From Hemiscyllium ocellatum (lineage: Eukaryota), in the NCBI RefSeq assembly GCF_020745735.1, contig NC_083409.1:9723534-9787533 (forward strand): a stretch of DNA of 64,000 bases. The letters run 5' to 3'. Of the stretch, positions 34,890 to 62,049 are shown piece by piece (within the stretch, counting starts at the first letter, position 1; the number at the start of each line of letters is the position of its first letter). The position numbers were made by a program, and so were the translations under genes. The notes beneath the pieces are model-generated. The model was not told where the DNA came from, ran no database searches, and saw only the letters and a program-made list of their open reading frames with translations.

Positions 34890-35125
34890 CCGCACATCAG
34901 TTGATTGGCTGCATTTCAGCAGGTCGTTGTCAAGATTGGCTGGTTAGCCTGTCAATCAATTACAATCATCAATCATTATTCATTTTCAAATGATCCCTTT
35001 AATCAGGGATTTGTGTAGGTTACAAGATTCCAAAAAGAACAGAAACTGAAAGCTGTTAGGACTCAATAAATACAATCTGATGCATTCCCTCTTCACTTTG
35101 TTGGTCCAGGCCCAGCTGATGGGAT
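34890..35125. promoter_or_regulatory. Candidate 3' regulatory module downstream of C1
   Basis: E-box abutting ATTGG (34904), second ATTGG (34935), GAAACTGAAAG IRF-type motif 35042-35052 and CAGCTG 35113-35118. All are retained with the same spacing in the C3 copy. Function is inferred. Confidence 0.5.
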
Positions 35126-36965: not shown

Positions 36966-36969
36966 CACT

Positions 36970-38995
36970 CAGAAAAGCCTTGACTTCACTCCAGCCTCTG
37001 CCTCCACTTCTGCCCATCCCACTCTGCAACCAAGACTGCAACTACATTTCCCAGGGTTACCCCTGAGTCCTACTGCCTACCTGCAGCCAGCCAGCACATT
37101 CGCTCTTCCTCCTCACCCATACACCCCCACAGTGCACCCTCTCCCTCCACTTCTCCCTCTTCACTTCATCCCCACCTTCCCACTCCCCCCTCCTCACTCC
37201 ACTACAAACCTCCGCCCCAATCTCCTTTCTCTCCCTCACCCATTCCCCCATGCTACATCACAACCACCCCTCGCCCACCACATGCCATCACCCTTTCTCC
37301 CCAAAAACTCCACCCCGAGCCTTGTTACATATTTACTATGCATCCCGACCACAAACATTCTGAGGCCAAAAGGTCCATTCTCATGGAAGGACTCACATTC
37401 ATTCCCCTGTGCCTCCACCTCAACAAATCCCACACCATCCAGGATGTGGAGCTCTTTTGCCACCTCTACCTCCGTATCTTCTTCTTTAACACAAACTCAC
37501 AACCTCCCTCTGAGGACCCCTACTCCTGCCTCCAATGTTCCTCCTCTGCTTGGTCACGACCCTGCTCCCCCTCACCCTCAATAACTTTTACTTTAACCCC
37601 TCCCATTTCCTTCAAATCCAGGGGGTGGCCATGGGCACCCAAATGGGTACCAGCTACTTCTGCCTCTTTATCGACAGTCCCTCTTCAGTATCTACACAGG
37701 CTCTGTTCCCCAACTCTTCCGCCATTACATCAATGACTGCATCAGTGCAGCATCCTGCACTCAGGCTGAACTGGAACAGTTCATTGACTTCACCCACAAC
37801 TTTCACACCATCTTCAAATTCCCTTGGTCCATCTTGGACACCTCCCTCCCCTTTCTTGACCTCTCCATTTCCAATTCTGGTGACAATCTTCGGACAGACA
37901 TTTACTACAAAGCCACAGATTTCCATATCTAACTGGACCACACCTCATCCCATTCAGTATCCTGCAAGAACTCCATCCCATTCTTCCAATTCCTCTGCCT
38001 CCTCCCCATCTGCTCTGATGAGGAGACCTTCCACTGATCATAGATGTCCACCTATTATGAACAACGTGCTTTTCCTCCTTCTGTCATCCAACACACTCCT
38101 CCCTTTCCCACTCCACTGCTCTTAATCCAGCCCCCTCCAAACACAATTAAAACAGAGTCCCCACTGTCCTCACCTATCAGCCCACCAATCTCCGTATCCA
38201 AAACATCATCCTTAAACACTTCTGCTAACTCCAACTAGACCACACCACCAAATACATCTTCCTCTCCCCACCACTGGATGCCTTCCATAAGGACCGTTCT
38301 CTTTGACAATTCTTGGTTTGCGTCACTCTCCCACCTACCCTCCCGAACCCCAGGTACCTTCCCTGCTACTCAAAACGATGCAAAGCCTACTGGTACCCTA
38401 ATCCCTCACCTCCATCCAGGGCCCCAAGCAGTCCTTTCAGGTGAGACAGAGGTTCACCTGCCTCTCCTCCAACCTAATTCACTGCACCAGGTGCTCCCAA
38501 TGTGGTCTTCTCTACATCGGGAAGACCAAACATAAAGTTAGGGAATGGTTCACCGAGCATCTTAGCTGGGCCCGGAGGGGCTGACTTTACCTCCCAGTCA
38601 CTATCTATTTTAATTCCCCTTCCCACTCCCTTTCTGAAATGACCATCCTTGGCCTCCTCCATTGGCACAACAAACCAAACTGCAAATTGGAGGAACAACA
38701 CCCCATATTACGCCTGGGCGGCTGACAGCCCAGAGGACTCAACATTGAGTTCTCCAATTTCATATAACCACCCTTCCCACTCCCCTGTCTCCCTTCCAAA
38801 TCTCTCTCCCTCCCTTCCACTCCTTCCTGCCAGCTACCACATTCATTCCTCCCATTGACCAACCAGGTCATAACTTCTACCTGTCATCACCAATCCCCAC
38901 TTCATCATCCCGTCCCTGCCACCCCCTTTATCTTAGCTCTCCCTACACCCAGCCCCCCCCACCCCCATTCCTGAAAAAGAGTTACACACCGAAAT
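36970..38995 (+). mobile_element. Decayed Penelope-like element (RT plus GIY-YIG)
   Basis: RT motif FLQIQGVAMGTQMG, frameshifted YINDC, LPFLDLSIS and GIY-YIG-like CSQCGLLYIG.TK. The 3' end carries a degenerate hammerhead core at ~38968-38998. Confidence 0.85.
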
Positions 38996-39003
38996 GTCAA
39001 CTA

Positions 39004-39627
39004 GGGTGGCACGGTGGCTCAGTGGTTAGCACTGCTGCCTCACAGCACCAGACACCTGGGTTCAATTCCTGCCAGTCTATGTGTAGTTTGCACATTCTCC
39101 CCGTATCTGCCTGGGTTTCCTCCGAGTGCTCCAGTTTCCTCCCATAATCCAAAAATGTGCAGGTCAGGTGAATAGGCTGTGCTAAACTGCCCACAGTGTT
39201 AGTCAGGGGTAAATATTGGGTAGAGGAATGGGTTTGGGTGGGTTGCTCTTTGGAGAGGTGGTGGAGACTTGTTGGGCTGAAGGGCCTGTTTCCACACTGT
39301 AGAGAAGGGGGCAGCATGGTGGCTCAGTGGTTAGCACTGCTGCCTCACAGCACCAGGGGCCCAGGTTTGATTCCAGCCTTGGATGTCTGTCTGCGTCGAG
39401 TTTGCACATTCTCCCTGTGTCTGCATGGGTTTTCTCCGGGTGCTCTGGTTTCCTCCCACAGTCCAAAGATGTGCAGATCAGGTGAATTGGCCATGATAAA
39501 TTGCCCATCGTGTTAGGTGCATTAGGCAGAAGGGAAATGGGTCTGTGTGGGTTACTGTTTGGGGTCAGTGTGGACTGGTTGGGCTGAAGGGCCTGTTTTC
39601 ATACTGTCGGGAATCTAATCTAATCTA
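39004..39627 (+). mobile_element. Two tandem HE1-type SINEs (39004-39303, 39307-39627)
   Basis: Two consecutive head-V-domain-tail units. Confidence 0.9.
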
Positions 39628-40494
39628 CTCCGCTGCCTGGCTTGCTGTGTTCCTCCAGCCTCCTGTCTATCTACATTGAATGGAAACAGCAGGAAAGGGC
39701 TGAACAATCAAGTATCAGGGACATTAACAAATGGGACATGAAACAGATAGATGCATTGAGGTGGTCATTCACAAAGAGAAAACCAAACTGGAAATGAAAC
39801 ATTCAGACACAGTGGACCGAATTTAATATCAGAAAATGTGAGACCATGCACTTTGTCAGAATAATCTAAAGGCCGACTAGTATTTAAATTGTGAGAGATT
39901 CCAAAAAGTGCAGTACAGAGTGATCTGGATGTTCTTGTGCATGGGACACTGAAAGTTAGTGCAGGTACAGCAAGGAATTGAGAAGGCAAATGGAATTTTC
40001 ACCTTTATTGCTGGGGGTTGGAATTTAAAAGTAGAGAAGTCTTGTTAAAACTGTGCAGTGTGTTAGTGAGCCTCCATTTGGATTATTGTGTGCAATTTTG
40101 GTCCCTGTATTTAAGAAAAGATGGACAGCCATTGGAGTCTCCCTCCTGCTCCTATTTCCCATGTCCTTGTGTGCTCCAGTGTCCTTCCCTCACAGCAGAG
40201 CTGGCTGGAGCCTGCCTGCAGTAACAGCCTCCAGTCTCTGGGTGGTGCTGCCAAAAGATCTGCCTGGCCCAAGCTGTCACAGTTCCCACGTTACAATAAT
40301 GTCAGAAGTATTCCATTGGCTGCAAAACATTTTCAAACATCTTACGTTCAAGGATGGTATAACAGAAAGATAATTCTCTCTCTTTTTATATTTTATCTCC
40401 ATGCCTTCCCACCTATTACCTAACAACATTCTACACTTGTGTCAAATCCAGAATAAATCATGAATCTCTGGGAGAGCTTAATCTATGACAACAC

Positions 40495-42660
40495 TGGGAT
40501 TAATGACCACATCCTCAGTGGGCTTTGTGGGTGAAGGTCAATAGCAGTCTCATTGTGACTTGATCTGAGTTGGTCTGAGTCAGTCAGTGTTATTGTTCTG
40601 GGTAGAGACAGTACTGACCAACTTCAGACCCTGTGATCTGCTTGAGACGAAGGGTTATCTGTGCAGGGCTTTCACACATGGCTCACTCACATAGTGAAGC
40701 AGGGATTCCCCATTTTGCAAGAGTAAATGGAACTAACAAACTGGGTGGGCATGACACCCCCACCCTGTCCCCTGAGAGTGGGGACAGGAACAGTAATGTT
40801 CTCAGAGAGAAAGGATGGTAAAAATGGTACCCCACAGAGAGAGAGAGGACAGGAAGCATGACACTCCCCAGAGACAGGCAAACAGTATCTGTCTGCTCCC
40901 CACTTTCGTGTTGTGACATATGTCGTTGGGAAATGGGTTTGGTTTATATTTTCTCAATTGTATTTAGGTTTGATGAGGTGATTTGGTAACAATGATTCCA
41001 ATTCCATATTTTGTGTGGCAGCCGATCTACTGAAGGTCATCCTTTCATTTGAAGGTTGCCCAGGTTTCTGTCCAGGCTGATGCAGTATGGTCTACAGTGC
41101 TGCTCCTATTGGGCTAAACCATCACACACGAGGGAATCTGACAGACACCTTCTCTTTGTGCTGGCAAAGGGAGAGATTTGTTTATACTGTAATTGCGGCC
41201 AAAGAAATTAGTTAGTGGATGTAATTCCAGCTGAATATAATGTTCTGATGTTCATGATGGGATTAATCACGACAGTTCCCACTTGCCTTTACACTGATGG
41301 TGGAACAGGAAGTCACCACGCAGTGATCTCCTGGCTCACACTGAGAAACAAAGTTGATGGTATAACTGCAGAGAGCAAGACAATGGCTTGGACTCACCGA
41401 ACAACCAGAGGCTTCAGCCAACAACTGGGTCACAGACAAATGGAGTGTGTAAACGCTCAGTATCTCAGGGAACAAACACAACTACTGAGTTACAAAACTG
41501 AACAGGACTTTTTATGAAAATTGGCATTCCAAAAATAAATTCCAAACACAATATGTGTAAAAATTGAGTGCAATCTCATTACAAAGACTACATCATTTTC
41601 ATTGAAAGCTGGACGATAATGAGATGAGAATTCAAACAACCACCCACTCCATCACACGGTGTTCTCATCATAACACATTTGCAAGCCTCTTAAAACATGG
41701 AAGGAGAGGGAAACATTGCAAACTATATTACCATGAGTGAGGATCCATTAAAAACTAGGATCATGATGTTAAATGCTCCCAGCCATAAACAACACTGATG
41801 CATTCACATCATTAGTTTGTTAAATGATGTTAAAAAGTCTGCCAACCACTTTCATGAAGAAGGAATATTTAAATCTCAAGAGGCATTGATGACTTTTTTT
41901 CAGGACTATAGCAAGGAAGCAGCAGCTGACATATGAACTCCAACAAACTAATGATAATAGGCACTGAATCCAGAGCAGGCCCCTGAGAGAGAGAGAAAAA
42001 TCAACAGCAGAGATCTGTCCAGTGCTGGGAGCATTTTAGACAAGACACCTTGTTGCCAGCAAGTTACTGCAGCTTGAAAGCTCCAGTAGGTTCAGAAAGA
42101 GAAAAAGGACATTGTGCAGATTGTTGAACAGGCCCCTACACCTGGGCCTGAGGCAGGAGCCCAAGCTCCAACACACTGGCCTCACTTCACACCAACCTTC
42201 ACACAGTGCGGGGTCATGAACTCCGGCCATCAATCCCTCGGGGACCGGGACGGAGTGAGGGAACAGGGACAATTGTAGAAGAGTCAATAAGGAGTAAAGC
42301 AAGATGGAGAGGGTGTGTTGGAAAGGGGTGAGAGGAGGAAATATACTTTGTGCCACTCAGTACAGACATCATCTACGTGTATCACAGAATGAACAAACAA
42401 AAGTCACATCAAAGTACTTTTCTTATCACAGGGGACATTTTCATTGTAGTGTGATAAGTACCCTACTTCTGAAGCTGTAGACTCTCTCTATGGGTCTCTC
42501 CAGATTGAGCCTGTTCGCTCCAAGCAAGGCCCCAGTTTATTTTTTACTGATCAGGGACAGTGAAGCAGCTGCCCTCTAGTGGCGAGAGAGAGCTTGCACG
42601 GCTGCTGAGGATTATGGGTAAAGTCCCCTTCCATTCGCGCCCACACAAACCAGCAGCCAC
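40495..42660 (+). repeat. Distal 3'-flank block of cluster 1, inverted homologue of ~55505-57105
   Basis: Matching sub-blocks: 40500-40740 vs 57105-56860, 41030-41180 vs 56545-56385, 42109-42372 vs 56070-55808, and 42500-42610 vs 55674-55562. Confidence 0.9.
42566..42583 (-). promoter_or_regulatory. CTCF consensus motif (reverse orientation)
   Basis: The minus strand reads GCCACTAGAGGGCAGCTG. The core CCACTAGAGGGCAG fully matches CCASYAGRKGGCRS. Confidence 0.65.
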
Positions 42661-45439
42661 TTCAGCTGCTTTATTGAAAACCACAAGCTTTAAGGCGCTG
42701 TTCTTTCAACGGTGGAACTGGACACACGATCAAACGAGTTAGGGACAAATGAAGGAGATTCATCCTCTTCAGCCTGCTCCCCATGGCTGACCTGATTATT
42801 CACCTTCTTACCTTACTCTGACAGATTTTTGAGAAGCAATGACTGTCTACTTCTTCACTACAAGCATTCAGAGGTTTCAATTTCAATTCCAAAGACCTAT
42901 GACCTTTGCAAGAAATCAAAACCCTGCTCATCTAGGTCTTAAATGAGGGAACTTATTTTAGTTTTATATTCTCCCTGAAAAGGAAGCATTCTTTTCACAT
43001 CCACGCTGTATTCTATGCTCTTGTTGATATGACATCTGCTTTAATCAGCTGCTCTCCCATGAGAACAGCTGCCCATCCTGCCACCTTCAATGACTGATGC
43101 ACAGAAACATCCAGGTCCTACTGCCCCTACACCCACCCATACTTGTACCCTTTAGTTTGTTTTGTCTCTTCACGTTTTTCTTCCAAAATGAATCAGTGAT
43201 ATCTCTTTGTATTACATTCCATCTGCGACCATTTGTTCATTCCATTACCTATACCCTTTTTGAAGTTTGACACTATCTTTTTCATGATTCGTAGTAGATC
43301 CATCAGCAAATTTTGAAACCATGCCTTGTGCACTCAGATTTAAATATTTTAAGTAATTTTTAGAATGAACTATTTTATAAACTATTTTAAATCAAGCTTC
43401 AAATTTATTGCCCATCTCTAGTTGCTTGGACTGAGTTCTGAGCCAGATCATGGGGCCGTTAAGAATGAATCGCGTCACTGTGTGGGACTGGAGTCACAGA
43501 CCGGGTGATGGCTGGGTTCCCTTGTCCAAACTACATTCATGAACATGACATTGAGTTTCATTGTTTTTTTGTTCAGATTCTAGCGCCTTCCTTCCCAGAT
43601 ATTACATGGCTCACCACCACCCTCTCCAGGACAATTAGGGAAGTGCAACAAATAGCCGCCACTTTTGTGTCCGCCCATCCCAGGAGAAATCAAAATAAAT
43701 GAGATACACTTCAAATGATCAAACTGATGAGGCTTCAACTCATCTCTTTGAAAAAACTGGAGGCTTTCCCAGAAATAAGCCATGACATGGGTGACCCTGG
43801 TTTGTCAGACTGAAAGGTGGAGTGTCCTTCGGATTGACACTGGGATCAGACACAAAACGAATTACACTCAAAGACCGAACACACGGCTATCAAAGCGGGT
43901 CACCAAACTGCAAAGAGCAGCAATTTATCTGGAAGAACTCAATAGGCATCAGTGATTATCAGAGCATTCGGCAAGCAAGTGTCAGATATTGTTGAACACA
44001 CCAGAAACACAGTCACACAGAAAGAGAAGCTATTGGGATAGAGCAGGGAAACGGGAAAAACTGAATTTCTCCACTGAGAGCTGGAAGGAGTTTTCTCGGT
44101 TGTAACTCCTCTGAGAATGATAAAGATTGAAGGGCCGTTTATATTATAGACAACACTGCAGCGCGCAAGAAAGGATGTCGAGTAGCAGATCTCCTTTAAA
44201 TTGGAAACAATATCAGAAATAAAGGTCAATGTGATTTTGGATTAAATATTCAGAGTGAGGAGATGGAGGGGAGAGTGACCATGGCAGCTGTCCTGAAGAA
44301 CGGTTAGGTCATGGCTAGAATGGTGCACAGTTAGGGGCTGCTTTGAGGGACAATACATAATGGGTCATGGTCAGGGGATCTAGGGTCACAAGAGATGTGC
44401 AGGCTAGCAAATGGAAAATGCCATGGAAAATGCAGGATTACGGGAATAGGGTGGGGGAGGTGTGGGTCCGGGTGGGATGGCCTTCAAAGGGTCGGTATAA
44501 GCTTGCTGGGCTGTGTGGCCTGCTTCCACTCTGTAGGAATTCCTCAATTCTGTGATTCTATGAAGGCCAGAACAGGATCTCGACAGTGGAGGGAGGGTAT
44601 TCTGATGTTCAAAAATTCTTCAACAAATAAACACAGTAAATATAGATTTAATATCAGTGCAGACAAACTGAAAGGCAAAATGACATTTTCTCCCATCACA
44701 TACCAGGTACAGAAAAGAGATCAGGAAAACCATTTTGATGCAGTTATTGGAATTGAATGATGAATGATGATAAACAGAGTACTCCATTCAAAAAAAAGAC
44801 AGAATTACTTTTTAGAATTTCACCAGGCCTGAAGCAAAAGAGGAAATCAGGATCAAAGAGTCATATGAGAATATAGTACTTGGGTGAGATAAAACCCTTT
44901 CTGTGAAAACATTTCATTTTGCCTTGCTTTCTCTCCATGGATGCTACCTGACCCGCTGGGATCTCCATTCTTTTGCTGCGCTATTTCTTACAAATTGTCT
45001 TGTTGTGTGCAAGACAAAAGCTTTAACAAAATGTCTCTTTTTTTTAGCAACACTTGACTTTGGATCAGTTTGGAGAGAAAGCAGGGCCATGGAATCATCT
45101 TTCCCTGCAGGGAGGGAGGGAGTGTGTGTAGAATCTCCCATGGGCAGGGTTCTCCTGGCTGCCACCACATCAGGAAGGCTGGAGCTTGATGATCGAGCTG
45201 AATGGACAGGGCTCACTCTCACAGTCCTCAGGGCCATGGAGCCTCTTGTGACGGGAGCATCTGCTTGGTGTCAGGGCAGACAATGACATTGCAGTGGGAT
45301 TAGAAATGGGACAACTCGACAATGGATGCTGCACAATGGCTGCACTGACTCTTCCTCTCTGACTGATCCCTCCCCACACACAGGAGGAGTTGCATTAGGA
45401 ACCTGTTCTAAAGGGCTACAGCCCACTGCAGCACTCCCG

Positions 45440-46150
45440 ACCTGCAAAGAGAAGAACACTTCTACAAAGACTTTTGCCAAGAACAGATATTCCCGCAACT
45501 TCATCCACAGATGCATAACAGAAAAACAACGCAATGGGGACATGCCATGAGCTAACTCACTAGCCACACTACCTTATATAAAAACATCACAGTACTCCAA
45601 CCACTCAAACGGCCCAGAAACTGACAGCCACGCTCTGACAACCCACGAGAACAAAAGGCCCAATACCTACCGTGTGAAAGACAGATGTAATTTACAAGAA
45701 TCCATGCAACGTTTGCACTAACTACCTCGAACAAACAGCCAGACAACTAGCCATCCGCATCCATGAACACCAACGAGCCACTAAACCCCATGAGCAGCTG
45801 TCCCGAGTAGCTATACACACAGATGACAAGGACCACAAATTCGACTGGGCCAACACTATGATCATAGGACAAGCTCAACAGAGGACAGCCAGAGAATTTC
45901 TAGAAGCATGACACTTATCCATGGGCTCCATCAATAAGCACATTGACCTAGACCCAGTATACCGACCACTGCAACGAACATCAGGAACCAATAACCGGAA
46001 ACAGCAGGAATCGAACCAAATAAATTCCAGAAGACACAGCACAACAGCACTTCACAGGAAGCACCAAAGCTCTGAAGATGTCACCGAGACAGGGGACAAA
46101 ATGTTTACAAATCAACTTCCCAGCTCGGTGGGCGTACCCACAACTACAGC
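45440..46150 (+). mobile_element. Penelope-like 3' remnant of a second family
   Basis: KNRYSRNFIHRCI and HKFDWANTMIIGQAQQRTAREFLEA (GIY-YIG C-terminus). Hammerhead-like CTGAAGA-T-GTCACC/GGGGAC-aAAA at 46072-46105. Confidence 0.75.
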
Positions 46151-47820
46151 AAGGGGGGTGGGGGGTGGGTGTGGGGGGTGTGGGTGGTGGTTCCTGTCCT
46201 ACAGTGCTCTCCCAAACCTTACCTGCCATCTTCACAGTCAGATCTTCATGCCCCTTACTACACATGGAATTGGACTGCCTGGTCCTGAGTCTTATAACAT
46301 CCTTCTGGGACAAAGTCTCCAGGTATCTCTGCACCTCCCTGATGTGTCACCAATACTTTCAACTCAGCCTCCAGTCGAAACACCCAGTGTGGGAGTTGTT
46401 GTAGATTTATGCATTCACTACAGATGTATTTAACCTGAGTCATTTTAACTCAATAAAGAAATGTTGATCCCATTTACAAATGAAAGATATCCATTCCTCT
46501 GTTAAACCAGTAATTGTCTTCAGTATCTGAATTAAAGTTTTAGTGCTTTCCATTTATTGACCCTCCCGAATTGGGGTGTCCCGAAGCAGTACAAGACGAC
46601 ATGAGGATACAGATGGGCTGGGAGGGTCCGATGGGCTGATCAGTAACAAGTGGAATTCATTCAGATAAATGTGAGTCAGTGGACTGAGCTCCCCCTGACC
46701 ATGTGAGTGAGGTGAGGGCAGAGTGACAGCACTTGACACCAAGGCCTCTTTGATGGTGTGTGGCATCAAGGAGCCCGAGCAATGCAGCAGCTTTTCACCT
46801 GCTATTCCAGGGAAGGGATCAACATCAGGATCCCTCCGAGCAACTCCTGGGAATTCTGTCATCCCAAAGGGACACGTCCTCCTCCTCAGTTCCCACAAAC
46901 AGCAGCAAGTCAGCCACACACTGTCCAAACTGTTTGGGGGAGCTGACCTGAACTCTCACAGCCCTGTGCCATGCTCTGCTGGAAGATGGAGGGACTATTG
47001 GGGAGTCCTCGGCACAGGCAGCTCCATCAATATTGTTGGTCTTTAAACGTGAAGGTGAACTTGTCCTGGTCCTCAGCCCTCCCTGCCCCGATATGGACTA
47101 GAACATGTTCAAAATGACCAACTGTGGAATGACCCACTGCCAGTCCGACAGCAATGAGCCAATCTGCTCTGAACACTCCCTGAGTGAGCTCACTCCATTA
47201 TGTTCAGATACACTGCCATTGAGTGCCCAGGGAGCCCACCCTTACACTCTCTGGTTTTGATAGCCCTCCCATCACAGAATCCCCCCGTGAACCCCTTCAG
47301 TTCGTTCACCACCGGAGGGGGCTGGTCTCAGTGGTTTTGATGGACGCATCTGTGGGTGAGATATAATGATATATAACTCAATATGTTCCCTATTCCCCAC
47401 CCACAGACGTATGGACACAGGCTCTTATCCATTCATCATACACTATCAGGCACAGGTATTCAGAATGGGTACTGCCCCTTCAGAGCACCCCCATGGTGGA
47501 TGGAGGGTTATGGAGAGAAAGGTTCCCTCCCCACTCCGGGTTTGGACCTTTCCCATCTACACTCTGAGTTCAGCTCACTCTCAACATGATTCTTCAATCT
47601 TTCTGAACTCCAACATACCTTCCTTCTTTCCTCCATTTATTGGGGATGATTTTCTCAGGGCCCTGCATTCCTGCTGAAAGTGCCCTTCTGTCCCTAACTG
47701 TAGTATTGCCCTCCTGCTCCCGGGACCCCATTGCCCCCTCTATTCTCCCCCTCGTGTTCCGTGCCTTGAGGGTGGAGGGTTTCAATTCACACACCTTTTC
47801 CCTGAGGCTTCAGCTCGGGC

Positions 47821-48616
47821 CATTTCCAAAGCACACACGAGACAGAGACTGAATCTTCTTCATCTTTATTCCCTTTTCCAGATTGACATTGACAGAAAAC
47901 AGTCAGCAATTAACAGCCCAGACAGAGGAAGCTGCTCAAATTCACAGCCACAATGGAGCTTGAGGAAAACACTTGTGGAGATTTTCTCAATAACCTGAGA
48001 ATCCTGTCCCTTTAAACAGTGACAAAACCTTATATTGGAACTGGTGGCTGAGCAGGAAGGAGATCTGGTTTACTGAAGCAGAGACTTCTGAGGTTCACAT
48101 TGTTTTTATACAGCTCACAGTTTTCAATCTTTGAAAGGTTATGCTTGTTATTACAAGTTAACACTGTCCCCAACAAACAGTCTCCTGGACAGGGACAGAA
48201 TAGGGTCAGATACAGAGTAAAGCTCTTTCCGTACTGTTCCCACCAAAGACACCCAGGACAGGGACAGGATAAGAAACAGAATAAAGCTGTCTCCACACTG
48301 TCCTCGTCAAACACTCCCAGGACAGGGACAGCACTGGTTGGGAACAGAGTGAAGCTCTCTCTATAGTGTCACAGTAACCTGCCTTAACCCCTGAACCTCA
48401 GAGTCTCCCAGAGGCCAGTCTCAAGAAGGAAGAGAGTTGAAATTCAGTGCTGACAATGACCTTTGTCCTGCCAGCTCAGCCCTGTTCTATTTAAAGTTGT
48501 GTCTCCTCTGTGGACTGTCTCAAACACATTACACACATTCTGATCTCCTGATGCTCTTGCGAGGGGAGAGGAGAAGGTCACATGGGTGGGGGCACAGGAG
48601 AAATGAGTGTTGGACT
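47821..48616 (-). pseudogene. Truncated kappa C pseudogene C2 (last ~29 codons plus 3' UTR)
   Basis: 48616-48529 aligns to the C1 3' end (...SIRRSECV*) with 8 substitutions and a 1-nt deletion. The acceptor and first ~80 codons are missing, with intron-derived sequence joined directly to the remnant. The 3' UTR and AATAAA are homologous out to ~47821. Confidence 0.9.
48160..48375 (-). repeat. Three units of a ~64-68-bp repeat inside the C2 3' UTR (single unit in the C1 and C3 UTRs)
   Basis: AAGCT anchors at 48220, 48284 and 48352. The minus-strand unit GAGCTTTACTCTGT...CTGTCCCTGTCCTGGGAGTGTTTGA.G.GGACAG matches C1 34470-34530. Confidence 0.8.
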
Positions 48617-48994
48617 GGCAAAAGTATCATTTTGAACATTTGTATCCAATACCCAACAAACCCGATGTTTTTTAAATTCCCTTTTATTGTGGACATTGAA
48701 GTCCCCCACCCAGAGTACATTCTGTGCCCTCACCACCCTCAGAGCTTCCTCCAAGTGCTATTCAACATGGAGGAGAGATTGACTCATCAGCCGAGGGCGG
48801 ACAGAACATGGTCATCAGCCAGAGGTTTCACAGAATCAGAGAATCATACAGTGTAGGAGAGGTCCCTCATCTGATCATGTCTGTCCCACCAAGGCAAAAC
48901 TAAAGCTACTCTCCATCAGCTTTCCAGAACTGGGTCCAAAGAATTGAATGTTCGGATATTTCAGGTGCCCATCCAGGTATTTTCTAAAAGGTAT

Positions 48995-49480
48995 ATTTGT
49001 TAAATATTGACCAAGACACCATGGGGATCTGCTCTGCTCTTCTAATAGTGGCATGGCATCTTCTACTGCACCCTGAGAGGGCAGACATCAGAACATCCCA
49101 TCTGAAAGATAGTCTCTGAGCACTGAACCTCTGACAGTGTTGCGCTCCCTCAGTATTGACACACCAGCAGTGCAGCACTCCCTCAGCATGAACTATCTGA
49201 TAGTGCAGCACTCCCACGGTATTGACTTTCTGACAGTGCGGAATTCCCTCAGTACGAACCCTCTGACAGTGTGGCACTGTCTCATTACTGACCTTCTGAC
49301 AGTGCAGCACTCCCTCAGTACTGACCCATCATTAGGGCAACACTCCCTCAGTACTGACCCTCCAATAGTGTGGCACTCCCTCAGTACTGTCCTTCTGACG
49401 TGCTGCATTCCCTCAGTACTGACCCTCTGACAGTGCTGCACTCCCTCAGCGCTGCACTGCACTCTCAGCCTTGATAATTT
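48995..49480 (+). repeat. DeuSINE (SacSINE1-like) fragment with an internal 33-bp minisatellite of about 10 copies (49108-49460)
   Basis: Deu-domain-like TGCTCTTCT..ATAGTGGCATGGCATCTT...CTGAGAGGGCAGAC, followed by the unit CACTCCCTCAGTACTGACCCTCTGACAGTGCAG with anchors at 49143, 49176, 49209 ... 49439. The family name comes from my recollection of the consensus. Confidence 0.75.
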
Positions 49481-52059
49481 GCTTCAGTGATAGAATCACG
49501 TAATGATGGAATCTGAACAATGTTGAAGCAGGCCATTCACCCCAATGAGTTCACACCAATCCTCCGAAGAGCATCCCACCCAGATCCAAACCACTGCACT
49601 ATCCCTGCAACCTGCATTTCCCAATGGCTCATCCACCCAGTCTGCTACATTGTGAGTGTGAGGGGAGAGTGATCCCCACTGAGACCAGGCTGAAACCTCC
49701 CAGTCCAATGGCCTGCCTTGCTTCACCATCCCAGCCCACACTTGGAGGAATGAGACCACCTGGGGAGGCTCGAGATGTTTCCCAGCCAGAGATAGTGCCT
49801 TCAGGAGAGAGATGGTGAACAGATGATAGGGGCAGGGGGCAGTGGGGTCTGTGGTCTTGAGGTGGGGTGTAGGACACATTGAAGCAGGCGATGGCAGGTG
49901 CTGAACCCTTTCCCCAGAAAGAGTTTGTAAGTTGATGGGTGAAAGTAGTGGGGGGGGGGGGCACTAGAGTAATCTTTTGTTGCTGCTGAAACTCTTGCTG
50001 CCTGCTCAGTCACGTCTGAGAGACACACAGACACATCAGACACACAGGAGGCAGCTTTCTGTGGATGTTCTCCTGGGCCAGGCCTCATCAATCATGGAGC
50101 TATGGTCAGTAACAGTGTAAGCTGTGTGGCCCTGAAAGCCTGAGTCTGCAACTCAGCTCGGAAGGACGTCAGCTCATTCATCAAAACTGGTTCTGTCCCT
50201 CTGCAGCCTAGCCGGTCTGCCTGTGCCTTTTCACCACTCCCAGGTTTTCCCTTGTGTTACAGCTCATTCTCCTGAGGGACAGCTGTACTAAGGCCCAGTG
50301 GAGTGGACTCGATGGGCCGAATGGCCTTACTTCCACTCCTCTGTCTTCTGACCTTGTCACTCTGTCAGATCCTCTGCAAGAAACTCATGGCTAACCATCG
50401 CCCTCTCCAGGATAGTTAGGGAAGGACAATAAATAGCAGACACGTCAATGCTCTCCCCATCCCAGGAGGAATCAAAATAACTGATGGACAATTCAAACAA
50501 TCAAACTGATGGAAGGTGGTTAACTCAGTCCAGTGATTAAACTTCACCTGGTAATTCCTGCATTAAGTTCAAGATGAAACTATCCTGGTCTCTGCTGAAT
50601 TTAGATCAATTTTCATTGTTAACTTAATACATTTCCATCTTCATTCTTTCTCTGCAAACTGATCCTCATTTGAATGTTGCGAAAACAAAACATTTTGTTG
50701 AAGCTTTTTGTCTTGCATACATCAGGACAATTTACAAGAAATGCCACAGCAAAGGGAAACAATATTTAAACTGACGTGTTCATAGTGACAACACCTCAGC
50801 CTGTCAGCACTTTCCTCATATGCAATATCAATGCCATGTTTTTCTCCTTTGCTTGGTACTTTTACAATTATCCTGATGAAGGCAAAATGAAAAGCTGCTA
50901 AAAACCTGGCAATTTTCAGGCCAGTTCAATATTGTCAAATGACTATTTGATCCTAATTTGTTCTTTTGCTTCAGACCTGTTCAAATTCCAAGAAGTAATT
51001 CTGTCCCATTTTGAATGGAGGACCCAGTTTACCAGCACTCACTGAATTCCAATCTTTGCATCAAAATATTTTTCCTGATCTCCTTCCTGTACCTGGTGAA
51101 TGACCGGAGAATGTGTCATTTTGCCTTTCTATTTGTCAGTATTGACAGTAAATCTACATTTACTGTGTCGATTTCATAAAGAAGTTTTGTTATCAGAATA
51201 CCCTCCCTCCCCCCCTCGAGATCCTGTTCTGGTGTTTCCCTGTAACCTAGATCCCCTATCCCTGTCCCTGGACCATTCTGCAATGCCCCTCAATGAAGCT
51301 CCTAACTGTACACCATATCCCAGATGTGACCTAACCATTCTTCAGTACAGCTGTCCTGGCCACTCTCTCCTTACTCTCAATATTCATTCCAAAATCCCAC
51401 TGGCTTCACCCATTTCTTTTTTCTGATTTTTCTTTCCCAATTTTAAGTATTTATGTTGCCCAACATCCTTTCTTGCCCACTGCTGTACATTGTTTACAAT
51501 ATGAGCTGCATTTCATCCTTTAACGTTCTGAGTCATTACAACCAGGAAAGCTCTCAATAGAAAAATTCAATTAATCCCATTGCCCTGCTCTATCCCAACA
51601 GCTTTAGTGTATTTATGGTGCATTCAATGACATCTGACACTTGTCTGTCTTACCCTCTTACACCCACTAATGGCTTTCTCTTGAGTTCTTCCTGACAAAT
51701 TGCTGTTTATTGCAGTTTGGTGACACACTTTGGTAGCCGTTTGTTCGGTCTTTGAGTGTAACTCATTTTGTGCCTGATCCGTAGGGGACTCCACCTTGCA
51801 ATTTAAAAATGCAGGTTCACCCATGTCATGGCCGATGCTCTAGTCTTTCAAAGCAATGAGTTCAAGCCTCACCAGTTTAATCATTTATTTTCATTTCTCC
51901 TGGGACAGGGCAAGCTTTGATTTGTCTGCTATTTGTTGTCCTTCCCTAATTGTCCTGGAGAGGGCAGTGGTGAGCAATGTCAAATCTGGAACATAAAACA
52001 TTACAGCGCAGTACAGGCCCTTTAACCCTCTGTGTTGCACCGACCTGGGGAACTATTCT

Positions 52060-52424
52060 CTTCTTCTGCCTGGGAACCCTCCAACCACAAGGGATGAACT
52101 CAGATTTCTCCAGTTTCCTCATTTCCCCTCCCCCCACCTTGTCTCAGTCGATTCCCTCGAACTCAGCACCACCCTCCTAACCTGCAATCTTCTTCCTGAC
52201 CTCTCCGCCCCCACCCCACTCCGGCCTATCACCCTCACCTTGACCTCCTTCCACCTATCACATCTCCATCGCCCGTCCCCCAAGTCCCTCCTCCCTACCT
52301 TTTATCTTAGCCTGCCTGGCACACTCTCCTCATTCCTGATGAAGGGCTCTGGCCCGAAACGTCGAATTTCCTGTTCCTTGGATGCTGCCTAGCCTGCTGT
52401 GCTTTAACCAGCAACACATTTTCA
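52060..52424 (+). mobile_element. 5'-truncated Penelope 3' end with 10-nt target-site duplication
   Basis: Encodes the LGTLQPQGMNSDFSSF terminus. Flanked by GAACTATTCT at 52050-52059 and 52425-52434. Confidence 0.85.
52332..52367 (+). ncRNA. Minimal type I hammerhead ribozyme motif
   Basis: AUUC-CUGAUGA-A-GGGC(UCUG)GCCC-GAAA-CG-UC-GAAU. Stem I is 4 bp, stem II is 4 bp, and stem III is reduced to the palindrome ACGU. There is one extra A after the core. Activity is untested. Confidence 0.7.
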
Positions 52425-52429
52425 GAACT

Positions 52430-54580
52430 ATTCTGAAGCCCATCTATCCTACACTATTCCATTTTCATCCATATGTTTATCCCGTGACCATTTAATTGCC
52501 TTTAGTGTTGGCGAGTCTGCTACTGTTGCAGGCTGTGCATTCCATGCCCCTACTAGTCTCTGAGTAAAGAAACTACTTCTGACATCTCTCCTATATCTAT
52601 CACCCCTCAATTTAAACCTATGTCCTCTCAGCATCTGAGGAAAAAGGCTCTCATTGTCCACCCTATATAACCTTGTGATTATCTTAGTATATCGCAATTA
52701 AGACAACTCTCAACCTTCTTCTCTCTAACAAAAACAGCCACAAGTCCCCCATCCTTTCCTCATAACGCCTTCCCTCCATGCCAGGCAACATCCTAGTATA
52801 TTTCCTCTGAATTCTTAAATTCCCACATCCTTTTTTTAATGCGGTGACCACAACTGAATGAAATACTCCAATTGTGGCCACACCAGAGTTTTGTACAGCT
52901 GCAACATGATCTCATGGCTCCTAAATCCAATCTCTCTACCAATAAAAGTTAACCCACCATAAGCCTTCTTAACCACCCTATCAAACTGGATGGCAACTTT
53001 CAAGGATCTGTGTACATGGACACTGAGATCTCTCTGCTCATCTACACTACTAAGCACCTTACCATTAGCCCAGTGCTCTTTATTCCTATTGCTCCTTTCA
53101 AAGTGAATCACCTCACATTTTTCTGCATTAAACTCTGCATTTCCCACCTCTCAGCCCAGCTCTGCAGCTTATCCATGTCTCTGTGTAACCTGCAATATCC
53201 TTCAGCACTATCCACAACTCCACAAACCTCAGAGTCATCCGCAAATTTATTCACCCATCCTTCTATGCCCTCATTCAGGTAATTTATAAAAATGACAAAC
53301 AGCAGTGGTCCCAAAAGAAATGTTTGCGTTACACCACTAGTAACTAAACTCCAGGATGAACATTATCCATCAATAACCATGTTCTGTCTTCTTTCAGCTA
53401 GCCAACTTCTGATAAAACCGCTAAATCACCCTCAATCCCATGCCTCTGTATTTTGTGCAATAGTCTATCGTGGGGAACTTTATCCAATGCCTTACTGAAG
53501 TGCATATCCACCACATCAACCGCTTTACCCTCATGCACCTGTTTGGTCACCTTCTCAAAGAACCCAATAAGGTTTGTGAGACCCGATCTACCGTGTTGAC
53601 TATCCCTTTCTAGATGATTATAAATCCTATCTCTGCTAACCTTTTCCAACATTTTACCCACAACTGAAGTAAGGCTCACTGGTCTATAATTACCAGGGTT
53701 GTCTCTACTCCACTTCTTAAACAAGGGGACAACATTTGCTATCCTCCAGTCTTCTGGCACTATTCCTATAGACAATGACAACATAAAGATCAAAGGTAAG
53801 GTCTCTGTAACCTCCTGGCTTCCCAGAGAATCCCAGGATAAATCCCACCCAGCCCAGGGGACTTATCTATTTTCACACTTTCCAGAATTGCTAGTACCTC
53901 CTCCTTGTGAATGTCAATCCTGTCAGTCTAGTAGCCTGTATCCCAGTATTCTCCTTGACAACGTTGTCTTTTTCCAGTGTGAATACTGAAGAAAAATATT
54001 CATTAGCACTTCCCCATCTCTTTGCACTCCACGTACAACTTTCTACTACTCTCTTTGATTGGCCCTAATCTTTCTCCAGTCATTCTTTTATTCCTGATAT
54101 ACCTATACAAAGCTTTCGCATTATCCTTAATCCTATCCACCAACAACATCTCATGTCCCTTCCTGGCTTCCTAGCTCTCTCTTTTGGTCTTTCCTAGCTA
54201 ACTTGTAACTCTCAAGCACCCAAACTGAGCCTTCAGGTCTCATCCTCACATAACCTCCTTCTTCCTCTTGACAAAAGATTCAACTTCTTTAGTAAACCAC
54301 AGCTCCCTCGCTCGGCCACTTGCTTCCTGCTTGACAGGTGCATACTTATCAAAGACATGCAGTCGCTGTTCCTTGAATAAGGTCCACATTTCAGTTGTGC
54401 CCATCCCCTGCAGTTTCCTTCCCCGATCCTATTCATCCTAAATCTTGCCTAATCGTATCATAGTAGCCTGACTCCACCAATAACCTTTGCCCTGCAGTAT
54501 ATATCTATCTCTTTCCATTGGTCTGGTAAACAAAACCAAATTGTGGTCACTATCATCAAAGTGCTCACCTACCTCCAAAT
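52430..54580 (-). mobile_element. CR1 LINE ORF2 remnant
   Basis: GNYRPVSLTSVVGK, FSKALDKVPHDRLL, GPLLFVIFIN and KFADD peptides. Confidence 0.9.
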
Positions 54581-54979
54581 CTAATAACTGGCCAGTTTCA
54601 TTAACCAGCACCAAACCCAACGTGGCGTTCCCATTCTGGGAAGGAAGGTGCTGGGATGGGTACAAACAAAAACCATGAAACTCAATGTCATGTTCACAAA
54701 TGTTCTTTAGGCAAGGGATCCCAGTCATCACCCGGTCTGTGACCCCAGTCCCACAGTGACATGATTCATTCTTAACGGCCCTATGACCATCCTCAGTAAA
54801 GAACTCAGTCCGAGCAGCTGGAGATGGCAATAAACATGAGGCTTGTCAATTACATTAATGCCCCGAGAAGGAATAATGCAGCTCTTTGCTGTCTGCCTTT
54901 AAGCCTCGGGTCCACCACACTCTCGCTGTCATGGGTCTCTAATCCTCTCACATTAATTCATTAGATGATGGCAATATGT

Positions 54980-55202
54980 GGGCGGCACGGTGGCACAGTA
55001 TTCAATTCCCACCTCAGGCTACTCTCTGTGTGGAGTTTGCACATTCTCCCCGTGTCTGCGTGGGTTTCCTCCGGGTGCTCTGGTTTCCTCCCACAATCCA
55101 AAAATGTGCAGGTTAGGTGAATTGGCCATGCTAAATTGCCCATAGTGTTAGGCGTGGATTTGTTGGGCCGAAGGGCCTGTTTCCACACTGTAAGTAATCT
55201 AA
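54980..55202 (+). mobile_element. HE1-type SINE with internal deletions
   Basis: Head, V-domain and GTAAGTAATCT tail. Confidence 0.85.
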
Positions 55203-55504
55203 AAAAAATGCGTTGAGCTTTTACTTTGAACTGTCAGGTCTCTTTTCCCATGCCTCTCTCCTCCCACCTCCTTCCAAGCCTTTCACCATATGTTTCCTGT
55301 GACAGCCTTGCTGTGCAGAATGAAAGCTCTCTGTGTTCTCTGAGCCCTTGCTCTATCTTGTGTCTGTCTACTCTCCAATGTTCATTTACTCAGGAAGGTA
55401 AGTGTTACAGAATTAAGTGGGAATATGTTCCAGGTCAGCCATGGCCTGACTGACTGACTGGGGAACCAGGCCAAAACAACTGATAATTCATTCCCACTGG
55501 AATC

Positions 55505-57105
55505 CACCGGAATGGCTGCAGTTTCGTTCAGATGCTCAATGCCCGGGACTTGACGTGTGGTTCTCAGCAGCGGTACCAACACTCTATAGCCACTAGAGGG
55601 CAGCTGTTTCACTGACCCTGAACAGAACAAATGAACTGGGGTCCTGCTCGGGTCTAACCGGTTCAATCTGGAGAAATGAGGAGAGAGGGAGAGGGGGTGG
55701 GGGGGAAAGCTTCTGAACCAGGATATTTATCCCACCCCAATGAAATGTCCTCTGTGATTTGTTTGTCTTCAAAGTGTGTTTTTTTATTCATTCTCTGATA
55801 CACGGAGACAATGTCAGTACTGAGTGGGACAAAGTATATTTCCTCCTCCAACCCCTTTCCAACACACCCTCTCCATCTTGTTTTACTCCTTATTGCCTCT
55901 TCTACATTGTCCCTGTTCCCTCACTCCGCTCCGGTCCCTGAGGGATTGGTGGCCGGAGTTCATGACCCCGCACTGTGTGAAGGTTGGTGTGAAGTCAGGC
56001 CAGTGTGTTGGAGCTTGGGCTCCTGCCTCAGGCCCAGGTGTAGGGGCCTGTTCAACAATCTGCACAATGTTTTCGTTTTTCTTTCTGATCACAGACATTT
56101 TAATATTGCTTAACAAACTAATGATGGAAATATGTCAGTGCCGGGATTATTTAACATCTTGGTCCTAGTTGTTAATGGACCCTCACACGTGATAACACAG
56201 TTTTCAATGTTTCTCTCCCCTTACGTGTTACGAAGAGCTTTGCAAACATGTTTTGATGAGGACAGTGTGTCTTCAACACCATGTGACGGAGTGGGTGGGT
56301 TTATGAATTCTCATCCCACTACGTCCACTTTCAAGGAAAACTACCTCCACTGACCCATTTCTTTGGCCGCCATTTGCAGCAAAAGCAAATCTCTCCCTTT
56401 GCCAGCACAAAGAGAAGGTGCCTGTCAGATTCCCTCATGTGTGATGGTTTAGCCCAATAGGAGCATCACTGGTAGATCATGCTGTATCAGCCTGGACAGA
56501 AACCTGGGCAACCTCCAAATGAAAGGATGACCTTCAGTAGATCTACTGCCACATGAAATATGGAATTGGAATCCTTGTTCCCGAATCACCTCATCAAAGC
56601 CAAATACAACTGAGAAAATATAAACCAAACCAACTTCCCAAGGTCATTCATCAGAACATAACAAGAAATTGGTTAACAGACAGTTACTGTCTCCTTTCTC
56701 TGGAGAGTGTCACTGTAACTGTCCCCCCTCTCTCAGGGGAGTGTAGTTGTTCCTCTCCCCTCCCTCTTTGGGGCCATGCCATTTTGAGCATCCTTTCTGT
56801 CTGAGGATGTGACTGTTCCTGTCCCCCAACTCTCTCAGCGTCAGGGAGGGGCTTGACAGCAACCTGGTTTGTTAATTCCATTTACTTTCTTGTGAAATGG
56901 GTAATCCCTGCTTCACTATACTGACCCGTGTGTCAATACCCGGTACAGCTCACCCTCCATCTCAATCAGATCACAGGGTCTAAGGTTGGTCAGTACTGTC
57001 TGGCCCCAGAACAATAACACTGACTGACTGGAGACAACCCAGATCAAGTCCCAATAAGAGTGTTATTTACCTTCACACTCAAAGCCCACCGAGAAGGTGG
57101 TCATC
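55505..57105 (-). repeat. Distal 3'-flank block of the C3 cluster, inverted homologue of ~40495-42660
   Basis: Same alignments as above. The near-identical peptide strings in ORF-track entries 42036..42356 and 55811..56113 corroborate the match. Confidence 0.9.
55589..55606 (+). promoter_or_regulatory. CTCF consensus motif (forward orientation)
   Basis: GCCACTAGAGGGCAGCTG, 18/18 identical to the reverse complement of 42566-42583 while the flanks are visibly diverged. Confidence 0.65.
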
Positions 57106-59187
57106 AGTCTCTAATGTTGTCGCAGTGTAATGTTTCCCAGAGAAGGAGGAGTCAGTCTAAGGGAGGGATGTTGTGAGGAGACAGATGGGAAGGCATGGAG
57201 AGGAAACAAAAAGGAGAGAGAATTGTATTTCTGTTACACCATTCATGAGCTCATGATGTTCAATGCTGTTTACAGTCAATGGAATACTTCTGATGTGGAG
57301 ACAATGTTGTAATGTGGGGAATGCATCAGCCCATTTACTCTCAGCAGGCTCCCACAATAACAGCGAGCTATTGACCAGGACATTGGGGCTAGGATACGGA
57401 GCAGAGAATGGAAGAGGCTGGAAAATAAAACCCAAGCAGTCAGTAAGGCCTGAGTATTGGCTGGGTAGGAGGGAGATGGCAAAGCAAAGGGGCTTCTTAA
57501 AATTCATTCATGAGATGTGGGCATCACTGGTTTTGCTGGCATTTTATACCCATCTCTAGCTGCACTGTGAAGGTGGTGGTGCACTGCCTTCTTGAACTGC
57601 TGCAGTCCATGTACTGTAGAAAGACCCACAATGCTCTTTGGGAGGGATTTCCAGATTTTTTTTCCCAGTGACAGTGAAGGAATAATGATATATTTCCAAG
57701 TCAGGGCGGTGAGTGACCGGAAGGGGATGTTTCAGGGTGTGATGTCCTTATTTGTCTGTTGCCCCTATTCTTTGAGATGGAACTATTGGTGGGTTTGGAA
57801 GGTGCTATCTCAAGGAAGATTGGTGAGCTGGTGGTGATGGTACAGCTGGCTGAAAATGATCACCTCTCCACAGCCAGTGGTCACTCCCTTTCCTTTTATA
57901 TCAGTGAAACCTGTCAATAAATGACTTCTAGTCAGTAATAGCAACAATAACAATTTGTATTGATATAACATCTTTAATGTAGGAACCATCCAAAAGTTGG
58001 GCACATATAGTGTTTTTGCTGATGACCAAAAGAAGACAAAGAACTCGTTTGAAGAAGTGAGAGGGGTTTGTGGAGGAAATCCCCGTGCTGAGGGCCTGGG
58101 AGACTGAAGGCACAGCTGCCAGTCATGAGGTGGAAGGCCAGACTGGAGGGTTTGGGAGATGGGGGAGGGATTGAGGATAACCGAGTGGTCCATTATATCA
58201 CCTCCCCACCTGCTGCAGCAGGAGACTGGGGAGAGGAATTGGGAGGAGAAAGTGAGGTCTGCAGATGCTGGAGATCAGAGCTGAAAATGTGTTGCTGAAA
58301 AAGCGCAGCAGGTCAGGCAGCATCCAAGGAACAGGAGACTCGACATTTCGGGCATAAGCCCTTCCTCAGGAAGAAGGGCTTATGCCCGAAATGTCGAATC
58401 TCCTGTTACTTGGATACAGAGAGGAATCAGGAGGCTGGGCAAGGCACCACCCAGAGGCTGGAGGCTGCTACTGCAGGCAGTCTCCAAACCAGTTCTCTCT
58501 GAGGAAATGGCACTGGAGCACACAAGACCATGGGAAATAAGAGCAGGAGGAGGACTCCAATGCCAGACCATGCTTTCGTAAGTACAGGGACCAAAACTGC
58601 ACACAGTACTCCACGTGCAGACTCACGAACACCTTGTACAGTTATAACAAGGTTTCTCTACTTTAACATTCCAAGCCAAGCAATAAAGGCCTCAATTCCA
58701 TTCACCTTCTCAATGACTTGCTGCACCTGCACTAACTTTTTGTGTTTCTTGCAGAAAAACACCCAGATCCCTCTGCACTGCACTTTGCTAGAATCTCACA
58801 CCATTTAAATAATAATCTGTATTTTGATTATGCCTACTGAAGTGCATGACCTTCCACTTTCTGTCTTTAAACTCCACCTACTGTGTATTAGTGTCTCATT
58901 TCTAGTTTGGTCTTCTCTATGTGATTGTCCGTCTCTGTGTATCTGCCCGTACCATGTCCCATTCCCATTTGCTTACGGCCCAGAGACTTGGGTGTCCAGC
59001 CCTTTCCTGCTGGTTCCATTCAATATTGAACAGCTTCCTCGAGACAACGTAGCCCAGCATGTCATCCCCTCCTTCAACTGGGATTTTCCTTGCTGTCCAT
59101 TCCTTGGCACATTCAAGGCTCGGAGAGTTACTTCATGACTCGGTCCCAGACTCTGTGACAGGGGGAGGGGGTGGGAACAGAGGGAGA

Positions 59188-59500
59188 TCCAGGCTGCATG
59201 ACTGGGGAGTAAGGGGGAGACCCAGGGTCCAGGCTCCGTGACTGCGGAGTGAGGTGGAGACTCAGGCCCAGGGTCTGTGACTGGGGAGTGAGGAGGAGAC
59301 CCAAGGCCTAGGCTCCGTGACTGGGGAGTGAGGTGGAGACCCAGGGCCCAGGCTCCGTGACTGGGGAGTGAGGTGGAGACCCAGGGCCCAGGCTCCGTGA
59401 CTGGGGAGTGAGGTGGAGACCCAGGGCCCAGGCTCCGTGACTGGGGAGTGAGGGGGAGACCCAGGGCCCAGGCTCCGTGACTGGGGAGTGAGGTGGAGAC
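59188..59500 (+). repeat. 40-bp G-rich minisatellite, about 8 copies
   Basis: Unit CCAGGGCCCAGGCTCCGTGACTGGGGAGTGAGGTGGAGAC with anchors at 59200, 59240, 59279, 59319, 59359, 59399, 59439 and 59479. Confidence 0.95.
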
Positions 59501-60559
59501 TGCTAGATGATGGTGGGCTGTGAGAAACAAATGACAGTCGGCAACTGGAGGCCTTCACTGCTTTTCAAAATTAGTCCTAAGGCAAGTTTTCCACTCATCT
59601 CAGAGGGCTGGTGTTTTGACAGGGTTAATGGCTTCTCCAAAAGTCTGTCGTGTGAGAAAGCAGGATTCCCCTTCCTGTGTACGTCACAATGTTAAAGCAC
59701 AACACCATTCCCAAATCTCTGGCACAGTCCTTGAAACTACATCATTTTGGTTGGAAGCAGAGAGCACAGGCTGGTCATGCTGTGTACCCCATCAGAAAGG
59801 CCTGTGTGTGATCAGTTATACTGTATGGTATGCTCACAGACTGGGTGGCTAGGAGCTGGGCAATTGAATACAGCTCCATATCCTGAGCAAGATGTGCTCC
59901 CCCTCCCCTCCACCATCTCCAGCTGGCTGAGATTGGGAAAGAGGATCCGAGTGTCCGATTGTACTGTCCGCAAGCTTGTATGTCAGCCAAGTGGATCGAA
60001 CAGAATATGAATTCCCTGATTGGGGTGGATAATCTGATCCATTCAGGGAGATATGGCTGACAGAAATAAACAGAGCCACACATCAAATGACACCAGGTTA
60101 TAGTCCAACAGATTTTTTTTGAAATTCTTCACATGACTAAGGAGCAGCAACCTGATTTCAAATAAACTTGGTGAACTATAACCTGGTGTTGTGTGAATTC
60201 TGACTTGTCCACCGCAGTCCGACACCACATCAGAAAGAAACAGGAGTGTCAGACATCCTGTTTGCTCTGAGAGCTGCCTCTGAAGGAGCTGGGTCAGTGT
60301 CAAGGACCCTCCACATGACGGGCTACTGGCCTCTATGCAGTTGTTACAGTAACAGTGGGACCCACACTGACAGACACACACCTACAGACAGCATTGAATG
60401 ACAGTCACACCCACACTGACCAACATACCAACAGACAGTTTTGGGTAAATGTCACACCCATAAGGGGCATGTATGTCATGAGATCCTGACTGATGCTCTC
60501 TCTGAACTAAGACCTCACTCTGTTCAGTTTTGAGCTGTCGCTGTGAGGAACAGGGTCAG

Positions 60560-61930: not shown

Positions 61931-62049
61931 TTGTTAAAATTCCTTTTTGCTGGTGCAGTTTGAAGTCCCCCACCCAGTGTACACTCTGTGTTCAACGTGG
62001 CCGAGAGACTGATTCATCAGCCGAGGGAGAACAGTACATGGTAATCAGC

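Follow-up and report, generated by a model that had tools for sequence, protein, structure and literature searches.

Sharks have about a hundred antibody mini-genes that are nearly identical, of which a single B cell expresses one or a few, and the question is how neighbouring clusters of these genes stay independent of one another. In mammals, barriers made by CTCF shape both V(D)J recombination and the reach of enhancers. We examined a 64-kb stretch of DNA from a hemiscylliid shark (contig NC_083409.1; the whole stretch is called the window below), which carries kappa-type (shark type III) immunoglobulin (Ig) light-chain clusters and in which a divergent pair of CTCF-type motifs lies between two clusters that stand tail to tail. 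In our reading, to which we give a probability of a little over one half (about 0.55), the pair is one ancestral CTCF site that is present twice, in the inverted-duplicated tails of the kappa clusters, is occupied in vivo and separates the clusters. Should shark clusters also be backed by oriented CTCF sites that are bound, the architectural control of antigen-receptor genes would go back to the base of the jawed vertebrates. The question is directly testable, as CTCF chromatin immunoprecipitation sequencing (ChIP-seq) data and Hi-C data exist for the bamboo shark. In the literature that we searched we found no paper linking CTCF with shark Ig clusters.

The closest described counterpart is found in the mouse heavy-chain locus, in the set of 3' CTCF-binding elements (CBEs) called the 3'Igh CBEs or 'super-anchor', which are clustered a few kilobases downstream of the constant region, are oriented back, and are thought to anchor loops and to bound the locus (PMC10293834). 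The shark tail resembles them in having two same-orientation CTCF-type sites directed at its own constant (C) exon. The differences are considerable: the mouse has ten sites, in one translocon locus of 2.7 Mb with convergent VH partners, whereas a shark cluster, of about 12 kb, is backed by a strong site and a weak one, both of putative function, with no visible convergent partner and in a subfamily of clusters only. In addition, the shark cluster on the left (cluster 1) can do without V(D)J recombination.

A second likeness is to intergenic control region 1 (IGCR1) of the mouse and to the divergent pairs at the boundaries of topologically associating domains (TADs), since in these a divergent pair lies between two domains, as the shark pair would (PMC10115646, PMC10293834). 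The two CBEs of IGCR1 lie close together, and their deletion and inversion showed that they block RAG scanning; the shark pair, in contrast, is 13 kb apart and has a dead C remnant between its members. The CTCF orientation code holds in cartilaginous fish, where insulation minima have divergent sites, and TAD boundaries in skate are marked by MA0139.1 motifs with an orientation bias (PMC10115646); the shark pair fits this code. The CTCF sites borne by mammalian short interspersed nuclear elements (SINEs) provide a third likeness, namely passive multiplication together with carrier DNA. The carrier in the shark is an Ig cluster plus a fragment of a RabGAP gene, and it was segmental duplication that copied the strong site, the weaker one alone being part of a small repeated module. 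The locus would then be an example of a binding site spread passively by a segmental duplication unit.

One site in two copies of an inverted duplication

The left copy of the motif (A, 42566-42583, minus strand) and the right copy (A', 55589-55606, plus strand) both read exactly GCCACTAGAGGGCAGCTG, in agreement with the initial annotation of this DNA, which had pointed to an identical 18-nt sequence with a perfect CTCF core at these two places. Each fits the CTCF consensus CCASYAGRKGGCRSY at 15 of 15 positions, and they are the sole exact matches to it in the window. Scored with a CTCF matrix, A and A' each reach 19.9 of 27.3 bits, the top two CTCF scores in the window, where about 0.21 sites of at least 17 bits are expected per 64 kb. 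We found no third copy of GCCACTAGAGGGCAGCTG in the window, even at three mismatches (chance expectation 0.02). Six other shark Ig light-chain (IgL) loci, about 175 kb of sequence, contain neither an exact match to CCASYAGRKGGCRSY nor a CTCF motif of at least 14 bits. We rejected a reading of the E-box (CAGCTG) as an element in its own right, since these letters are where the extended CTCF motif ends on its 3' side.

By convention, a CTCF motif on the plus strand points right and one on the minus strand points left. Because of their strands, A points at the constant exon of cluster 1 (C1), A' points at that of cluster 3 (C3), and the pair is divergent, each motif facing its own cluster as had been proposed. 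The geometry that had been described also holds: motif A lies 8.3 kb beyond the C1 stop (34300), A' lies about 5.9 kb beyond the end of the C3 exon, and between the two motifs, which are 13 kb apart, lies the remnant of a further constant exon (C2).

The divergent orientation is repeated by a pair of weaker sites. Motif B (43615-43633, minus strand, 12.8 bits) has the same orientation as A, is about 1 kb further out and belongs to a low-copy repeated module, while its paralogue in the right arm, B' (51951-51969, plus strand, 15.8 bits), has the same orientation as A'. Each tail therefore has two same-orientation CTCF-like motifs, A with B on the left and A' with B' on the right. The pair B and B' is carried by the block 43595-44376, which matches 51989-51260 in inverted orientation. 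An extra copy of the module holds motif M (50396-50414, minus strand, 12.8 bits), which is opposite in orientation to B', and an inverted pair (50386-50485 and 51880-51979) links the modules of M and B'. The module is present in three copies in the window and in one copy, with a decayed motif, in a diverged kappa cluster of Chiloscyllium punctatum (L002). As a separate observation, the window has eight loose CTCF cores (CCnnnAGrkGGyr), and six of them fall in the 13 kb between the clusters (42570-55602), a concentration that is partly due to the duplication.

The left arm of the inverted duplication (31886-45094, plus strand) comprises the end of the J-C intron, C1 and the tail of cluster 1; a series of collinear inverted matches, running from 63955 down to 50633, joins it to the right arm (50633-63955, minus strand), which comprises C3 and its tail. 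The motif pair sits in the matched block of 42092-42627 against 56088-55545, which is 83% identical, and is in register with its surroundings: the coordinates of A and A' sum to 98172, and those of the adjoining matched blocks to 98180. The distal part of this block, immediately around motif A (42450-42640, minus strand), is paralogous to 55535-55720. A and A' are thus one ancestral site copied by inverted duplication, and are not independent of each other. The arms remain homologous over 2.5 kb or more beyond site A, which is therefore not at the very end of the duplicated unit; the initial annotation, which had placed the site near the distal end of that unit, was correct in making it part of the unit.

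Identity between the arms is very uneven. It is 88% in the 50 columns that contain the motif and 48-72% in the columns beside it, so that the substituted flanks noted earlier are real (48-88% identity per 50 columns). There is a local peak at the motif, yet perfect runs of its length are frequent in the arms: the 3.8 kb of aligned tail contain 18 perfect runs of at least 18 nt, and about 5% of aligned-tail positions could hold an 18-mer wholly within such a run. These runs rule out the 18-nt identity as proof of selection. Among the best-supported 40 of 821 differences between the paralogues, none falls in motif A and three fall 36-39 nt beside it. An identical motif amid diverged flanks is real, but with two copies it is weakly significant.

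The copy number of the site was measured in a whole-genome shotgun (WGS) run, X5, from contigs at least 80% alike. The summed depth over the motif A bin is about 400, compared with about 24 for a clean single-copy contig, 200-620 for the rest of the tail and 3500-5900 for transposon bins. The motif A bin thus stands at about 16 copy equivalents, or some 10-20 copies, like the surrounding tail, and transposon bins at 150-250. SINEs recur many times in the DNA that we searched, and site A is without a further copy in the window or the six loci. Site A is not on a dispersed transposon repeat, and the concern that its block might be a common repeat is answered by its low copy number on both counts.

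Enrichment over the motifs in public sequencing runs

Three small runs from 2018 (X9, X10 and X14) derive from a closely related or identical shark, here called organism B. They contain 35-42% of the words of 42092-42700, and their contig totals are 39-64 million letters. We placed the contigs of these runs on 39700-45600 (5.9 kb, in 30 bins) at 80% likeness, and the value given for each bin is the summed contig depth. Across this region X9 is flat, at roughly 0.1-18 in non-transposon bins, and X10 and X14 vary. The motif A bin (42458-42654) has a value of 8.2 in X9, 274 in X10 and 149 in X14, giving ratios to X9 of 33 and 18. For the two bins of motif B (43443-43836) the values are 12-16, 228-268 and 429-470, respectively, with ratios of 17-20 and 30-37. 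The transposon bins (39897-40093, 44428-44624 and 44822-45018) have values of 125-216 in X9, 123-189 in X10 and 193-291 in X14, and their ratios are 0.8-1.8. In the WGS run X5 there is no excess at motif A.

Apart from A and B, 39700-45600 has no CTCF-like motif of at least 10 bits, and both are peaks. The enriched bins are those of motifs A and B, their neighbouring bins and one further bin in X14; the transposon bins are not enriched. With 4 of the 30 bins enriched, we estimate that two motifs would land there by chance with p about 0.01-0.02. The longest X14 contig in the region has 758 nt, a depth of 58.7 and its start at 42517, 49 nt before motif A, where the X9 contig has a depth of 6.7. 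Position 42527 is covered by 14 contigs in X10 and by 10 in X14, which indicates that several paralogous copies are enriched, and a loose end in X10 at 42594 has the letters peculiar to the right copy.

X14 shares its sample with X9, the relation to be expected between a ChIP library and its input. A map of CTCF binding in the bamboo shark is credited to Hara et al. 2018 (PMC7471279), and a second article confirms their ChIP-seq (PMC9561540); shark CTCF has eleven zinc fingers (PMC7471279). Because of the pattern of enrichment and the existence of this bamboo-shark data set, X10 and X14 are likely to be CTCF ChIP libraries. Judging from runs that are identified by code, we put at about two in three the chances that Hara et al. 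2018 produced these libraries and that CTCF binds the site. The candidate CTCF sites of the initial annotation are supported by their strong motifs and, to the extent that these runs are what we take them to be, by the ChIP-like enrichment on A in two of them. The enrichment on the site, together with the RabGAP origin of the tail described below, is what is new here.

Site A is most likely occupied by CTCF in vivo, and the weaker same-orientation site about 1 kb further out likewise. The site is probably constitutive and would have spread passively with the duplication unit. A bound site pointing at its own cluster would stall cohesin arriving from that cluster, which is the behaviour to be expected from the orientation of the motif. 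The divergent pair, with two sites per side, would then form a constitutive barrier to loop extrusion and place the tail-to-tail clusters in separate contact domains. We infer this barrier function from vertebrate CTCF biology alone.

Origin of the tail and competing explanations

The source of the tail is suggested by a kappa locus of the zebra shark (L003), in which an intact, convergent RabGAP-TBC (RABGAP1-like) gene is annotated 2.5 kb behind the kappa gene (L003 20258-27784). The cluster tail of the window at 39675-41748 is 74-77% identical to L003 25856-27782, and the latter segment is inside the RabGAP-TBC gene (minus strand), upstream of its last coiled-coil exons, and is intronic. A kappa cluster of C. 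punctatum (L001) keeps two remnants of RabGAP exons (35864-36233) between its C exon and the same tail; the window clusters have lost these exons. From the arrangement in L003 and L001, the amplified unit consists of a kappa cluster plus the 3' part of the RabGAP gene. As judged by sequence comparison that reaches window equivalents 40542 (L001) and 41748 (L003), 0.35-1.5 kb short of site A, the tail with the site is a captured piece of a RabGAP-TBC gene and is not Ig DNA in origin. Given such an origin, site A probably arose in the RabGAP intron or travelled with it, and may be a passenger on the captured tail. This derivation is shown by the data, as are the sequence, orientation, paralogy and low copy number of the sites.

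Several observations weigh against an occupied pair of sites that separates the clusters. The right site serves a cluster with a damaged C exon. No motif of at least 14 bits and no consensus match is found within 10 kb 3' of C in L002, in a zebra shark lambda-like cluster (L004), in another C. punctatum isotype (L005) or in a whale shark lambda-like cluster (L006); these are the four informative loci of the six, as the flanks of L001 and L003 stop before the homologous place. In the 22 kb searched upstream of cluster 1, the best plus-strand motif, which would be the convergent partner, scores only 12.4 bits (at 8361), and the far side of cluster 3 is outside the window. The 18-nt identity of A and A' proves little by itself, because perfect 18-nt runs are common in the alignment. 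The count matrix that we used for CTCF is approximately JASPAR MA0139.1. As for the runs, their depth is a crude measure, with one figure per contig summed over paralogues at least 80% alike; organism B is not the best match to the window and may be a sister species; and no run came up when the library word was limited to 'ChIP'.

These weaknesses give room to other explanations, one of which is that the motif is a chance match that was copied by the duplication and is unbound, with the excess in X10 and X14 coming from another assay, from library bias or from the collapse of paralogues. Such a match needs to have arisen only once, since A and A' have a single independent origin; it would decay slowly, as the motif is without CpG; and its identity in the two arms would cause no surprise in an alignment where perfect 18-nt runs are frequent, nor would an accidental excess in coded runs with so crude a depth. 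A chance match of this strength should nevertheless be rare (at least 17 bits is expected about 0.2 times per 64 kb, and the 175 kb of other IgL loci have nothing of even 14 bits), and chance would also have to enrich both CTCF-like motifs of the stretch while sparing the transposon bins (p about 0.01-0.02), so we regard this explanation as improbable. Far less credible still is a site borne by a transposon, in which the motif would be carried by a dispersed element and its presence behind clusters would reflect insertions. Fragments of SINEs and long interspersed nuclear elements (LINEs) are indeed abundant in the region, site B is in a module with three copies in the window and one in L002, and the contigs of other loci match only 43605-43651. 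At site A, however, the X5 depth of about 400 equals that of the tail and not the 3500-5900 of transposon bins, no further copy exists in the window or the six loci, and the two copies occupy collinear positions of one duplication.

The initial annotation had gone further than our reading, proposing that each cluster may carry a 3' CTCF boundary as part of the duplicated cassette and owe its autonomy to it. In its full form, this proposal makes the site an integral component of every cluster, kept by selection and confining RAG scanning and enhancer action. The orientation of both sites toward their own clusters, the 88% peak of identity around the motif, the ChIP-like enrichment and the presence in each tail of a further motif with the same orientation, a likeness to the clustered 3'Igh CBEs (PMC10293834), would all suit this proposal. 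Against it, the site is missing within 10 kb behind C in one kappa (L002) and two lambda-like (L004, L006) clusters as well as in L005, the C2 remnant is without a CTCF site of its own, and conservation at the motif does not clearly exceed that found elsewhere in the arms. The tail comes from a RabGAP intron, and the convergent 5' partner that the proposal called for did not appear, the 22 kb that precede cluster 1 having no strong candidate. RAG scanning has only a weak link to this locus, where cluster 1 is joined in the germline, lacks recombination signal sequences (RSSs) and needs no RAG, and C3 has lost its last codons and stop. A selected boundary in every cluster is therefore doubtful; only some kappa clusters, a subfamily, have the site, and it is not universal in shark IgL clusters. 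One extension of our own reading is comparably tentative. Should there be head-to-head clusters elsewhere, each 3' site would have its convergent partner in that of the neighbouring cluster, and the domain would be a pair of clusters. There might be a subfamily of kappa miniloci with CTCF-bound 3' anchors, captured from the intron of a neighbouring RabGAP gene as the clusters amplified, in which each cluster or head-to-head pair forms its own loop domain. If true, this would parallel, in miniature, the 3'Igh CBE super-anchor of mammals, and could underlie cluster-autonomous rearrangement, expression and exclusion in cartilaginous fish.

The clusters and other features of the region

Cluster 1 has a VJ exon (22258-22587, plus strand) that is joined in frame in the germline, and no RSS (heptamer-spacer-nonamer) is found anywhere in the window. 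Clusters of this germline-joined class are known (PMC2193156). Its C1 exon (33977-34300, plus strand) encodes an intact kappa-type constant domain with its stop at 34300, 98% identical to a kappa chain of Chiloscyllium punctatum and 97% identical to one of Hemiscyllium ocellatum. The C3 exon (about 61470-61798, minus strand) has 95% protein identity to C1. A 19-nt deletion in it (region 61470-61545, minus strand) has removed the stop and the five codons before it (RSECV), and with them the terminal cysteine, which makes the link to the heavy chain. After the deletion come 90 nt of 3' untranslated region that are virtually identical in C1, C2 and C3. The C2 remnant (47822-48616, minus strand) consists of the end of a C exon and its 3' region only, without a tail of its own.

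In the zebra shark kappa gene of L003, V and J are unjoined, with canonical 12-RSS and 23-RSS. They are about 500 bp apart (L003 10497-11004), whereas those of the window are fused in frame (22529-22546), so that L003 and cluster 1 make a clean pair of related clusters, one unjoined and one germline-joined.

Beside motif A lies a hyper-conserved non-coding block (42109-42400; paralogue 55779-56070), with 92-98% identity between the arms compared with about 78% in the rest of the tail. Its bin has a WGS depth of 1730, or about 70 copy equivalents, far above the CTCF block, and shows no enrichment in X10 or X14. Open reading frames in or beside this block, or in the RabGAP-derived tail, matched no Pfam family above the cut-off, and no Rfam family was matched within 35-61 kb. 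One frame in the RabGAP-derived tail is open in the zebra shark (L003 27056-27544, plus strand), where it encodes 162 amino acids; the window version (41056-41535, plus strand) has 66% protein identity to it, is broken by one stop and belongs to no Pfam family. This frame may be a decayed transposon or a small gene.

The window also has two tandem arrays. One, with 7.8 copies of a 40-nt unit at 91% matches (59189-59500), is present in the right arm only; it was considered as a possible CTCF array and rejected, as it contains no motif of at least 10 bits. The other, with periods of 33, 66 and 99 nt (49122-49449), is near the C2 remnant and has no CTCF-like motif. Finally, shark-like Ig light-chain fragments (P0001 and P0002) are filed publicly as proteins of Aeromonas veronii and Salmonella enterica, and are probably host or sample contamination of bacterial assemblies.

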